A DNA stretch of 64,000 nucleotides from positions 1,054,001 to 1,118,000 of the forward strand of contig JAAOMT010000295.1 of the NCBI GenBank assembly GCA_016748015.1. The letters run 5' to 3'. The notes beneath the pieces were generated by a model. The model saw only the letters and a list, made by a program, of their open reading frames with translations, did no database searches and was not told where the DNA came from. The position numbers and the translations under genes are program-made. This DNA comes from Geosiphon pyriformis uo1. Its lineage: Eukaryota > Fungi > Glomeromycota. Below are positions 55,591 through 59,400 of the stretch, piece after piece (within the stretch, counting starts at the first letter, position 1; every line of letters begins with the position of its first letter).

Positions 55591-57339
55591 AACTTTTTAT
55601 TTTAGTTCATATTTAATAACTACGTTTAATTATACTAACCATTAATTTTGTGTATATATTTTTCAGACTTGTAATGCAAATAATTTGTGAGTATTTGCAG
55701 GATGCAGATTTCATTCTCTGATTTTTTTTAAATAATTTCATAAATGTTAAATAAGATTAAAATTGGGTAATTACGCTGGCCATTTGAGTTATCCAAGTTT
55801 TGCAGTATGAACTGGAGCATTATCTTGTGGAAAAAAATAAATTTGTATTGAATCTATGGCAATAAATAGCTTTTCAATAGCTCAATATATCCGAATTGAT
55901 TTAATATTCTTTTTTAAAACTAAAGAATTCAATTCAATTTTACAAAAACATTTCTATATTATAATTTTTTTATGGTGTTTTACAATAAATACTAAATTTT
56001 TCTAAGAGTAATAATTTTTATATGTTTAAAATTTATTAATTCTTTTTATTTAATTTTAAATGTACAAAATAAATATAATTAATAATAAAAATTTGTTCCT
56101 ATTTATAAATAATTAATAAATCGATATATGTAATTTTAAAGTTATTATTATTTTAAAAATGACAAAAATATAAAATATTTTCTGTTTAGTGTATATTATA
56201 AATGCTATAATATCAAACATTATAAAAAAATGTGTTAGAAATTTGTATTATATATATAATAAATGTTGGAACGTTGTTCTAAATCAAAAAATTCAGATTA
56301 CAAATTATAAATACTTAATTAAACAAATAAAATAATCAATATGTTTTTACTTATAAAAACAAAAAATTAAATAACAAATAAATTAAATTAAAATTAAAAT
56401 GTAAGAAAATAGTATATTTAAATATTTAATTAAAAGTGAAGTTTTTTGTATATTTTAAAAGTTTAACTAATGTATATTTAATAATTTTTTTTAATAAACA
56501 ATATATTTTTAATTTGAAAATAAAATCTTGTTTTTGCTTTAAAAAATATATAAAGTATTGTAATTTTTTGGTTTTGTAGTAAATTTAATATCAATAATTT
56601 TTATATTTAATTTATATACAAATAATTCTATATATAAAAAAGTTTTTTATTTTATAAAAATAGACTATAATTATAATTAAAAAATGGTTTTTTATTACAA
56701 GTTCATAATAGCATAAAAAAATGGTTTAATAAAAAACCAAAATAATTATCAATAAAATATACCTATTGTTGTTAAATTGTTTAATATAAGAGAAAATATT
56801 AATTGAATTTATTAATTATTTTTTTATTAGTAAAATAAGCTACAAGTTTGTGTAATGTTACTTCTTAGTTAATTTAAAAGAAAATAATATTTTAACCATT
56901 TTAAAATATAATACATTTTATAAATTATATCATTTAGTTAATTTTGTATATTTAAATTATAAATTCCTAAACTGACTTATATAATACTTATTAATACTCG
57001 CAAAATAATTTATACTCAAAGCTCATAAAAAAATTTTTGAGACTTATTGAAAATAATTATAGCAAAAATACTAAATTGGTTAAAAAACATAAAAAACTAA
57101 ATGATCAGAACTATTTTATAGTAAAAGCAAAATACTATATTGTAATATTAAAATTATTGCTTATTATACTTATAATTAAGCTTAATATGTTCATGTATTT
57201 TATTTAAATATTTAAGATAAAACAGTTTATAAGCAAATTAATTACATGTTAATAAGAATAAACTTTTTAAAAAAGATTTTAATTAAATTAAGCAATTAAA
57301 TAAAGACAAAAAACATTTTAAAATTACTTGTAACAATGC

Positions 57340-57770
57340 TAATTTTTGGTTTTACTTATATTTGGTAATTGGTGGTTATAATAAAAATATCAAGCTGAGC
57401 TTCATAATTTCCATATTAAATTCAAATATGACAATAGTTTTGGTCTAATTAAAAAACTTTTCACAGTAATTTGTGTTAATTGTATGGTCAAAGTAGTAAA
57501 TAGGTTTAGTATTTCCGGCCTGAATAAAGCCTGTTGTTATATTCGCATGGTTAAAGCCCAAGAATTTGCTAATGGCACTTTTCAGGAATTCAAGTTATTA
57601 AAATTGATAAGTCAGAGATTTTTATGGTAATAAAAAAAGAAGGGCTTTATTATTTTAGGTATTAGTACCTCCATCTTTGAAATATGAGTAGCAAAAATAT
57701 CTTTATCAAAATATTTGTCCATTTGTCAAGAATGAATTCAAAGATACCACTTGTCCTCAAGCCAGTACAA
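57340..57770 (+). mobile_element. Decayed DNA-transposase relic (DUF7869/Sola-like)
   Basis: Fragments IKLSFII..HIKFKYDNSFGLIKKLF..VNCMVKVVNRFSISGLNKA and PSLKYE*QKYLYQNICPFVKNEFKDTTCPQ resemble the GHTKFxxDxxFGLIK and RQxYLYxxIRxFV..DxxCP motifs. Multiple stops and frameshifts. Confidence 0.55.
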
Positions 57771-57905
57771 AATGGGATTGAATAATTTTGACACTCAACT
57801 ATGTCTTATCCAAGAATTTGTTAGTCATATTAAAAATAAATATAAAATATAGTTTGTTAAATTTGAGGTGAAGTATTTAAAAGGACAATTAATAAAATAT
57901 AAATT

Positions 57906-58385
57906 ATGGCACAAGAAAAATTAAAAAATCCACTTGTGAAAAAGCTTGTTTTTCTTCACAAAAGAACTAACTCAAAAGCTGACTATCTGACCTGGGTGGA
58001 ACAGTCTTTTCCTCAGTTAATTTTCGACCCAATGTTAAAGCTCACACAGTAGTTATCACCAAAAAATATGTTAACGATTTAAGAAGTATGACTGCTCAGA
58101 AATGAAATAATATCCTAGATACAAAACTGCAGCGATGATAACTACCGAATGAAGCTCAGCCTACTGATAAAAAAATTTCAGGCACTACGGAAAATGAACG
58201 TATTGTCGAAAAACTCCGTGATCCAGAAGGCTATGCAAAAGAGTGAGGTGAAAAGAATAAAGCTAACAAATTAGAACAAATTAAGAGACAATTAGAGAAA
58301 GAAAGCAATTCAAGTTGAATATCACCAATATGATTGATTCCTACTGTGTTAGTAACTATGGCAGTAACGGCATTGAGAAAAGAAT
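57906..58385 (+). pseudogene. HIT-family hydrolase-like fragment with C-terminal hydrophobic segment; reads best with UGA=Trp
   Basis: One frame gives STCEKACFSSQKN*LKS[W]LSDLGGTVFSSVNFRPNVKAHTVVITKKYVNDLRSMTAQK[W]NNILDTKLQR[W]*LPNEAQ...DPEGYAKE[W]GEKNKANKLEQIKRQLEKESNSS[W]ISPI[W]LIPTVLVTMAVTALRK, where [W]=TGA. It resembles the HIT PxxxGHTLVIPKKHV motif; the HxHxH motif is missing. Confidence 0.55.
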
Positions 58386-58704
58386 GTTCTTCAAGTGTAA
58401 TGGTAAGTAGCCATTGCAAGTGGCGTCATATGTTTATTCACGTTGTCTGGTTTTGTTGCAGCACGCCCCAATTTAAACGTATAGTCGAGCCTGGCAAAGG
58501 AAACAGATTCTTAATATCATATAATTTACTTGGCTAACTTCCCTTTGATCGAAAATTTGGGATGAACTTTAAACACAAAATAAATTTTTGGTATATGTAT
58601 TAAGAATAGTTTTCTTCACTCTTTGAGGCAATTCGATAATTTGCTCTTTCACAAAGCCTCAATTCTATAATGAATTAGTAAGCCACGTAAATGACATTCA
58701 AAGT

Positions 58705-59400
58705 TTAGTGTAACATTTTGTTGGCCCTCCATTTGATTTTAATACTCCTTGGCATTGAGGCAATAACCTCTTCGAGAACAGAGGTATCGAATTTCTCCCA
58801 TTCCTCCTTTTGCACAATCTTAAGTTCGACCATAGACATCATGTTTTTGGATATTTGTCCTTCAAATACTACTAGTCCTTTGAATCCCCCCGCGTAACAC
58901 CCAAACAATTATGGATTTTGAAAGTAGGCGCCAAGTAATATTTCTCCAATGTGCCGCCAAACTCTTGGCTGTCGTGATTGCTTCCCAATTTCCCCACTCG
59001 TCTCATCAGAGGAGATAACTTTTGCCCAATCGTAAACGATTTTATTTTTATTTTCCTTGCACCACCTAACACGAATATAAGCATGTGTTTCTAAGATATA
59101 CCGTGTTTTGCTGCAATACGTGAATGAAGTCCAGAATTGTACAGCACATTGACAGACTACATTTAAAGAGCTATATTTTTAACAATTTCGTGAACCAGTA
59201 AATATTTTTCGTGATTGCTAAAAATTTGTAGTCTTCCAGAACGTGGTAATTTTTCACTTTTTCCTGTTCTTTGGTACTTGACAATAAAGGGGCGTCTTAT
59301 TGTGGAGTCACGTCCAAGCAATTTTATGGTTTCTATGTATGCCAAAATCTTCCTTTTGTCAATTTCGTTAGCTGTGTCCAAGTGGATGTCATTTTTTTAT
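58705..59400 (-). mobile_element. Degenerate Tc1/mariner transposase remnant (copy B)
   Basis: Track ORFs 59163..59381, 58872..59084 and 58705..58908 are frameshifted pieces: NEIDKRKILAY..LGRDSTIRR..LPRSGR, WAKVISSDET, LAPTFK, GCYAGGFKG, EEWEKFDTSVLEEVIASMPR. A possible terminus TACAGTACCCC lies on the minus strand near 59500. Confidence 0.85.

Follow-up and report, generated by a model that had tools for sequence, protein, structure and literature searches.

The presence of bacterial DNA in eukaryotic chromosomes is familiar from two settings, the Wolbachia DNA known in insect and nematode chromosomes and the nuclear copies of organelle DNA, in both of which DNA from an intracellular bacterium lies in a host chromosome, unexpressible and decaying. 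Nuclear copies of mitochondrial DNA additionally carry a foreign genetic code as a fingerprint; fungal mitochondria read TGA as tryptophan. Fungi of the Mucoromycota harbour bacteria of another kind, the ancient, Mycoplasma-like Mollicutes-related endobacteria (MRE). The transfers published for MRE run from fungus to bacterium (PMC10507103, which refers to Torres-Cortes 2015 and Naito 2015 for such events), bacterial-looking matches in Glomeromycotina assemblies are usually treated as contamination (PMC10507103, PMC11423566), and matches confined to Glomeromycotina have been set aside on the same suspicion (PMC10507103). A literature search found no description either of transfer from MRE to fungus or of the element reported here. 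The present locus shares with the Wolbachia and organelle insertions the position of intracellular bacterial DNA in a host chromosome, and with nuclear mitochondrial DNA the fingerprint of a foreign code; unlike them, it appears to have arrived as cargo within a transposon that is bounded by repeats and makes target-site duplications, and it is represented by many diverged copies rather than by random fragments.

The DNA analysed, referred to throughout as the window, is a 64-kb stretch of the 128-Mb Geosiphon pyriformis assembly (G000:C664:1054001-1118000). A preliminary description had singled out positions 57906-58385 as a candidate decayed gene for a membrane-anchored HIT hydrolase, transferred from an endobacterium that reads TGA as tryptophan and lodged between two transposon relics. 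The explanation that we regard as highly probable is that 57056-58473 is a 5'-truncated and dead copy of a DUF7869 transposon written in genetic code 4, and that 57906-58385 is its passenger, an MRE-derived gene for a membrane-anchored protein with tandem HIT-like domains. It builds on the established code, family, bacterial homologues, transposon anatomy and lesions, and while it retains the decayed, MRE-related, TGA=Trp gene in a fungal chromosome, it replaces the insertion mechanism first proposed and withdraws the hydrolase function.

A recount of the frame that opens at 57908 and runs for 159 codons to 58385 gave the same translation and the same codon counts as before: six TGA (57980, 58103, 58136, 58244, 58316 and 58331), two TAA (57968 and 58139), and neither TAG nor TGG. 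The stop-codon make-up had been thought telling in itself, but within the window it is not unusual and on its own does not go beyond chance: a second frame of the same 480 bases likewise holds just two TAA/TAG codons, and the 64 kb contain dozens of stretches free of TAA and TAG with three or more TGA. The most striking of these other stretches translate to junk, and they were rejected as genes. Since such counts are weak evidence alone, the case rests on comparison with relatives. The flagged stretch had 13 further matches in the genome, at DNA identities of 70-85%, and a 122-aa piece of a better-preserved copy recovered 15 genome copies at 36-72% protein identity, so that the Geosiphon pyriformis genome holds at least 15 diverged copies of the HIT-like gene. 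The insignificant window-only counts would suit a chance open frame with no biological meaning; set against these DNA and protein matches, the protein matches in bacterial contexts and the conserved tryptophan columns described below, that view has a virtually negligible probability.

Alignment to the family allowed the surviving parts of the window copy to be delimited, all of them on the forward strand. The N-terminal part (57906-58117) begins with the ancestral start ATG at 57906, followed by the remnant of a Cys motif and then by the first strands of HIT domain 1 as far as Q-E/K-W-N-D/N-I-L. The ATG is out of frame with the remainder of the gene owing to a 1-nt deletion in an A-run near 57924, and alignment to three relatives (L015, L024 and L032) further disclosed a 3-nt deletion near 57933 and a CAA>TAA change at 57968. 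An in-frame internal deletion of about 0.5 kb, with its junction at 58112-58117 and a short TCYTA microhomology there, took away what remained of HIT domain 1 and almost the whole of HIT domain 2; copies on two other contigs (L015 on C702 and L005/L016 on C580) carry some 510-520 bp more between the two halves than does the window copy. The C-terminal module (58118-58385), also recognised by its match to the bacterial-context relative P0007, then presents in order the R-W-W motif (TGA 58136 and TAA 58139, the latter a former Trp), the GT-x-ENERI-x-EKLRDPEGY motif, a Trp codon at 58244, a coiled-coil stretch, the CGA>TGA change at 58316, a Trp codon at 58331 and the first half of a membrane helix (LIPTVLVTMAVTAL); after about 58376 the remainder of the helix is lost, as is the stop codon.

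Reading the TGA codons as tryptophan holds for five of the six: TGA 58103, 58136, 58244 and 58331, together with TAA 58139, all align with conserved Trp columns, and TGA 57980 aligns with TGG, TGA or Leu in relatives. The sixth, at 58316, is a mutated CGA, most copies having Arg at this position. With one frameshift, two nonsense codons, the 0.5-kb internal deletion and a missing left end, the window copy is dead. Polarisation was possible for three point lesions (57968, 58139 and 58316), and each is a C>T or G>A transition; that at 58316, CGA>TGA, lies at a CpG.

The genetic code was assessed at six conserved Trp columns, defined on the best copy, in 19 copies, which together gave 51 TGA, 9 TGG, 4 TAA and 1 TAG. 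One copy (L021, on C669) runs for 436 codons with 15 TGA, no TGG and neither TAA nor TAG, and another (L024, positions 973-2193 of its locus near the end of contig C601, with an intact terminal repeat adjoining it) has a code-4 frame of 407 open codons with 2 TGA and 4 TGG; the TGG codons of the latter coincide with TGA in the window copy in the contexts Q-A-W-N, H-R-W, K-I-W-G and P-L-W-L-I-P. Pairwise Nei-Gojobori dN/dS values were mostly 0.1-0.3 at pS values of 0.55-0.8, ratios that are rough because synonymous sites are near saturation; the window copy compared with L015 gave 0.21 (pS 0.67, pN 0.28), and a few close pairs lay near 1 (L018-L019, 1.24). Low dN/dS with TGA in place points to lineages that diverged under purifying selection in a setting where TGA means Trp. 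Judged by its Trp columns, the family is written in genetic code 4 (TGA=Trp).

The same observations bear on the caveat, already entered in the preliminary description, that TGG decays to TGA elsewhere in this DNA, and on the fuller rival that follows from it, in which a fungal HIT gene or pseudogene family of standard code had its TGG codons converted to TGA by repeat-targeted G>A mutation. The three transitions in the window copy are changes of that type. However, TGG>TAG is a G>A change of the same kind as TGG>TGA, and decay of a standard-code gene should therefore be incapable of yielding TGA over TAG at 51:1, a proportion that disposes of the caveat. TGA occurs moreover in the same columns of bacterial genes flanked by GatB, NusB and MnmG, which use TGA themselves; the dN/dS values of 0.1-0.3 signify selection with TGA in place; and no intron-bearing fungal orthologue occurs among the 69 relatives retrieved by the search described next. 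Mutation of a fungal gene family is accordingly regarded as exceedingly improbable.

That search, exhaustive and profile-free, used the TGA-free first domain of L024 as query against 1.84 billion representatives, and it returned just 69 relatives. Full-length members of the family, at 300-500 aa, comprise an N-terminal Cys motif, two HIT-like domains, a coiled coil and a C-terminal membrane helix, with a conserved module of the form R-W-W ... G-T-M-E-N-E-R-I-A-E-K-L-R-D-P-E-x-Y ... W-G-K-K; a subfamily made up of L021, L022 and P0007 has in addition a Cys-rich N-terminal extension. On its own, the HIT-like stretch of the window copy (57983-58102) matched Pfam HIT weakly (E=0.085), and Pfam and NCBIfam searches of the pieces gave sub-threshold HIT matches and nothing else. 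In direct comparison the HIT-like stretch is 57% identical to P0006 over 35 aa (pairwise E=4e-12) and the C-terminal piece 65% identical to P0007 over 23 aa.

An AlphaFold model of P0006, a full-length relative (mean pLDDT 70, with 80-95 in the domain cores), was matched by Foldseek to GalT-like tandem-HIT proteins at E=1e-8 and to single HIT proteins at E of about 1e-3, and precomputed PF01230 matches exist for the relatives P0015 and P0019. The predicted structure is that of a two-copy HIT alpha/beta fold (PF01230) of the GalT-like branch, an assignment that applies to full-length P0006 and not to the window fragment. Compared with the GalT-like enzymes themselves, namely galactose-1-phosphate uridylyltransferase, the ADP-glucose phosphorylase At5g18200 and Apa2, the P0006 model aligns over some 265 columns and shares the N-terminal Cys motif and the order of strands and helices. 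The differences are equally plain: identity is just 11-17%, the H-x-H-x-H/Q signature is replaced by H-x-Y-x-R in the closest relatives of the window copy, the family adds its conserved C-terminal motif, coiled coil and membrane helix, and the window copy itself is without both domain cores. Canonical HIT/HinT proteins of Mollicutes provide a second comparison. The first domain of the family is 29-37% identical to the single-domain HIT protein in three MRE-family genomes, and the Q-E-W-N-x-I-L and PKYKK stretches are common to both, but the canonical proteins are of only about 125-140 aa, have one domain and an intact H-x-H-x-H, and are without a membrane anchor.

At the position of the histidine triad, the clade of the window copy has H-F-Y-M-R-V-V and L024 has H-F-Q-L-H-L-V, the intact triad H-F-H-F-H being found solely in the distant relative P0015; in the window copy this segment lies within the internal deletion. 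By its residues, then, the active-site triad of the window's clade is degenerate (H-x-Y-x-R), so that the term HIT-like is justified and the term hydrolase, as first applied, is too strong. Given that degeneracy, the protein probably served the bacterium as a nucleotide binder at the surface or tethered to the membrane, and not as an active hydrolase.

The relatives include members in an MRE genome and in bacterial contexts. The relative P0015, a weaker homologue, is WNE40889.1 on CP125275.1 (615,212 bp), which is the circular, complete MRE genome of Benniella sp. AD185 (PMC10507103). On a 7.2-kb JGI contig (L037), P0007 is flanked by GatB and MnmG/GidA. A Logan contig carries P0006 downstream of genes for an ABC transporter and NusB, two tandem members adjoin a PemK toxin gene at L039, and P0018 and P0019 are located on a 125-kb contig with HigB, PemK, HU and HET/LRR genes. 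Housekeeping genes on the contigs of these relatives contain TGA but neither TAA nor TAG, the GC content is 31-35%, and the bacterial homologues of the HIT-like gene carry 4-14 TGA each. The contigs bearing relatives of full architecture are short metagenome contigs (~3.5-7 kb), and they are assigned to MRE by their genetic code, their GC content, the genes they carry and GatB identity; the GatB adjacent to P0007 is 47-54% identical to that of the GTDB family to which the Benniella MRE genome belongs.

A HIT match was obtained in all five genomes of that GTDB family. Three of the loci (L040, L041 and L042, in G039, G008 and G020 respectively) encode a canonical single-domain HIT protein with H-x-H-x-H intact, its gene standing immediately ahead of SmpB and GatB, with TrmD and a restriction-like gene in the vicinity. 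With the queries used, the five MRE-family reference genomes yielded weaker homologues only, of which the tandem protein P0015 of G001 is one, and no C-terminal module. A scan of the genome contigs with a single-protein query gave no match. Homologues are thus present inside bacterial chromosomes of this group, and by its gene neighbourhoods and code the family is native to TGA=Trp MRE; together with the Trp columns and the dN/dS values, the code-4 bacterial homologues uphold the endobacterial TGA=Trp origin originally proposed for this decayed gene in fungal DNA.

Other donors that read TGA as Trp have nonetheless to be weighed, whether a nuclear copy of mitochondrial DNA, a mitochondrial plasmid or an unrelated code-4 bacterium. 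Fungal mitochondria share the code, and the closest full-length relatives are on metagenome contigs. Those contigs, however, carry GatB, MnmG, NusB, an ABC transporter, PemK/HigB toxins and HET/LRR genes typical of MRE, the named matches are to an MRE genome and to Ca. Moeniiplasma MAGs, the GatB identities lead to the MRE family, and every informative relative has bacterial neighbours, all of which makes a donor of another kind very unlikely.

The vehicle of the gene was recognised on either side of it. Upstream, on the forward strand at 57056-57764, blastn to three full elements (L011, L012 and L015) identified the decayed C-terminal half of a DUF7869 transposase, a remnant with internal deletions, one TAA and two TAG from which the N-terminal half and the left end of the element are absent; in a tblastn search with the Ca. 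Moeniiplasma MAG protein P0145, residues 110-319 matched 57278-57760 (E=5e-20). Downstream, an intact right terminal inverted repeat occupies 58419-58469 of the same strand and ends in ...GCAGCACGCCCC, and directly after it, at 58470-58473, stands AATT, in the place where complete copies show a 4-bp A/T target duplication. The 24-mer at 58447-58470, the outer part of a terminal inverted repeat about 50 bp in length, occurs exactly in 19 places and in 62 with two mismatches or fewer, as against none for a reversed control, and its matches pair up in inverted orientation 0.4-10 kb apart. No left terminal repeat was found for the window element at up to three mismatches; the DNA upstream of 57000 has a GC content of 12%. 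In the inner part of the repeat (58420-58446) a palindrome, TGACGTCA, is conserved in all copies and reads GGCGTCA in the window.

The target duplication, ATAT or ATTT, was exact in five of six paired elements, and its form in L011, ATTT on both sides, identifies it as a direct repeat and not as part of the inverted repeat. Long elements have an open frame of about 610 codons containing 3-6 TGA, intact copies of which matched Pfam DUF7869 at E=3.7e-17; the genome as a whole gave at least 35 DUF7869 matches, most with internal TGA. Its repeats, duplications and coding frame mark the element as a cut-and-paste DNA transposon, bounded by ~50-bp terminal inverted repeats and encoding a DUF7869 transposase. 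The order transposase, HIT gene, terminal repeat seen in the window is repeated in L015, and the end in which the gene is followed by the repeat recurs in L024 and in the metagenome contigs L032 and L033. In the fungus, no autonomous copy in the standard code came to light, and no tRNA gene, such as a UGA-reading tRNA-Trp, was present in ten element-bearing loci or in the window.

The upstream relic is consequently the transposase of the gene's own vehicle, and an intact terminal repeat of that vehicle follows the gene, which is at variance with a gene lodged between two transposon relics, just as a family of at least 15 copies with its repeat at 62 places is at variance with a one-off insertion. 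The related proposal of a single integration of endobacterial DNA by end joining, falling by chance between unrelated relics, draws on the fact that the window copy is without its left end and so cannot display a target duplication of its own. Against it stand the intact repeat common to those 62 sites after the gene and the matching transposase remnant before it, the recurrence of the gene-then-repeat order in other copies and of the upstream transposase in L015, and the 4-bp duplications of complete elements; it is judged very improbable.

Several minor features of the element were recorded in passing. In two copies (L011:7428-9020 and L012:605-2023) the space between transposase and repeat holds other cargo, in the form of coiled-coil and Cys-rich frames with TGA. 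At two further places (L057, G000:C348:37691-38113, and L058, G000:C718:2169519-2170059) two repeats stand 0.4-0.5 kb apart with ATAT on both sides, and both places resemble non-autonomous miniature derivatives of the element. Apparent stop-free DUF7869 frames of more than 1000 aa proved to be spurious, being produced by runs of N, and the element copies L054, L055 and L056 (G000:C692 and C596) are interrupted by about 3 kb of N.

Pfam lists the domain to which the transposase belongs, DUF7869 (PF25273), as one of unknown function, and annotated relatives come from Geosiphon, Ambispora, Diversispora and Ca. Moeniiplasma glomeromycotorum MAGs; the form found here differs in being written with TGA=Trp. 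A transposase relative in a Ca. Moeniiplasma glomeromycotorum MAG is 63% identical, has four of five Trp residues encoded by TGA and sits among type I and type III restriction-modification genes, with no terminal repeat of the Geosiphon type found around it. With the queries used, neither the DUF7869 family nor the transposase piece was detected in the five MRE-family reference genomes.

The setting of the copy is that of a fungal chromosome, as had been stated at the outset. It lies 1.1 Mb into a contig of more than 1.1 Mb; upstream are the exons of a calpain gene, in which Calpain_III and Peptidase_C2 fall in different frames and so imply introns, and the downstream gene encodes a FAD-oxidase (FAD_binding_4). 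A Tc1/mariner-like relic on the reverse strand (58710-59400), with more than 70 genome matches at 64-90% identity, begins some 240 bp beyond the terminal repeat and is unrelated to the code-4 element. An assembly artefact, in which endobacterial or element reads were misjoined into a fungal contig, has a precedent in the co-assembled MRE contigs known from fungal assemblies of this group (PMC11423566). Here, by way of contrast, the copy is heavily decayed and 5'-truncated and lies deep in its contig between fungal genes and repeats, further copies are found at many other loci, with different flanks where these were examined, and a query for endobacterial SmpB found none in the Geosiphon assembly and thus detected no MRE contig; misassembly is very doubtful as an explanation.

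In a quick maximum-likelihood tree the Geosiphon copies did not form one cluster but several, among which metagenomic and bacterial-context sequences were interspersed. The window copy belonged to a well-supported group of eight, and the terminal repeat adjoins those members whose ends were examined. The sequence of events that we favour would begin with evolution of the gene under purifying selection inside bacteria reading TGA as Trp; the transposon would then have brought it into the Geosiphon nucleus, in one of many independent or near-independent arrivals. There the copy would never have been translatable, would have decayed by transitions, small indels and the 0.5-kb deletion, and would presumably have no present function in the fungus.

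More tentatively, and with appreciable doubt, the DUF7869 element may be conceived as a shuttle that lives in endobacteria and inserts copies of itself into fungal chromosomes, thereby sustaining a repeated and possibly ongoing one-way flow of bacterial genes to the host nucleus, the gene in this case being that of a membrane-anchored pseudo-HIT protein. Its TGA-bearing genes would be translated in endobacteria lying free in the fungal cytoplasm, and either transposase made by the bacterium or released complexes of transposase and DNA would insert copies with 4-bp target duplications; the deep, selection-shaped divergence among nuclear copies would then reflect many separate arrivals and not amplification in the nucleus.

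Read together with its family, the locus indicates that endobacterial genes lie physically within a fungal chromosome, and it offers a plausible vehicle, a transposon bounded by repeats that writes even its transposase in the bacterial code. The question raised is where a transposase that the nucleus cannot translate is made, and how it reaches nuclear DNA. For annotators, code-4-only open frames in these genomes are to be treated as real relics rather than noise: the open copy on C601 is already partly annotated as a fungal protein, its last 170 aa being the GenBank Geosiphon hypothetical protein G9A89_007681. C601 ends in the same sequence with which C643 starts, which suggests an assembly overlap.
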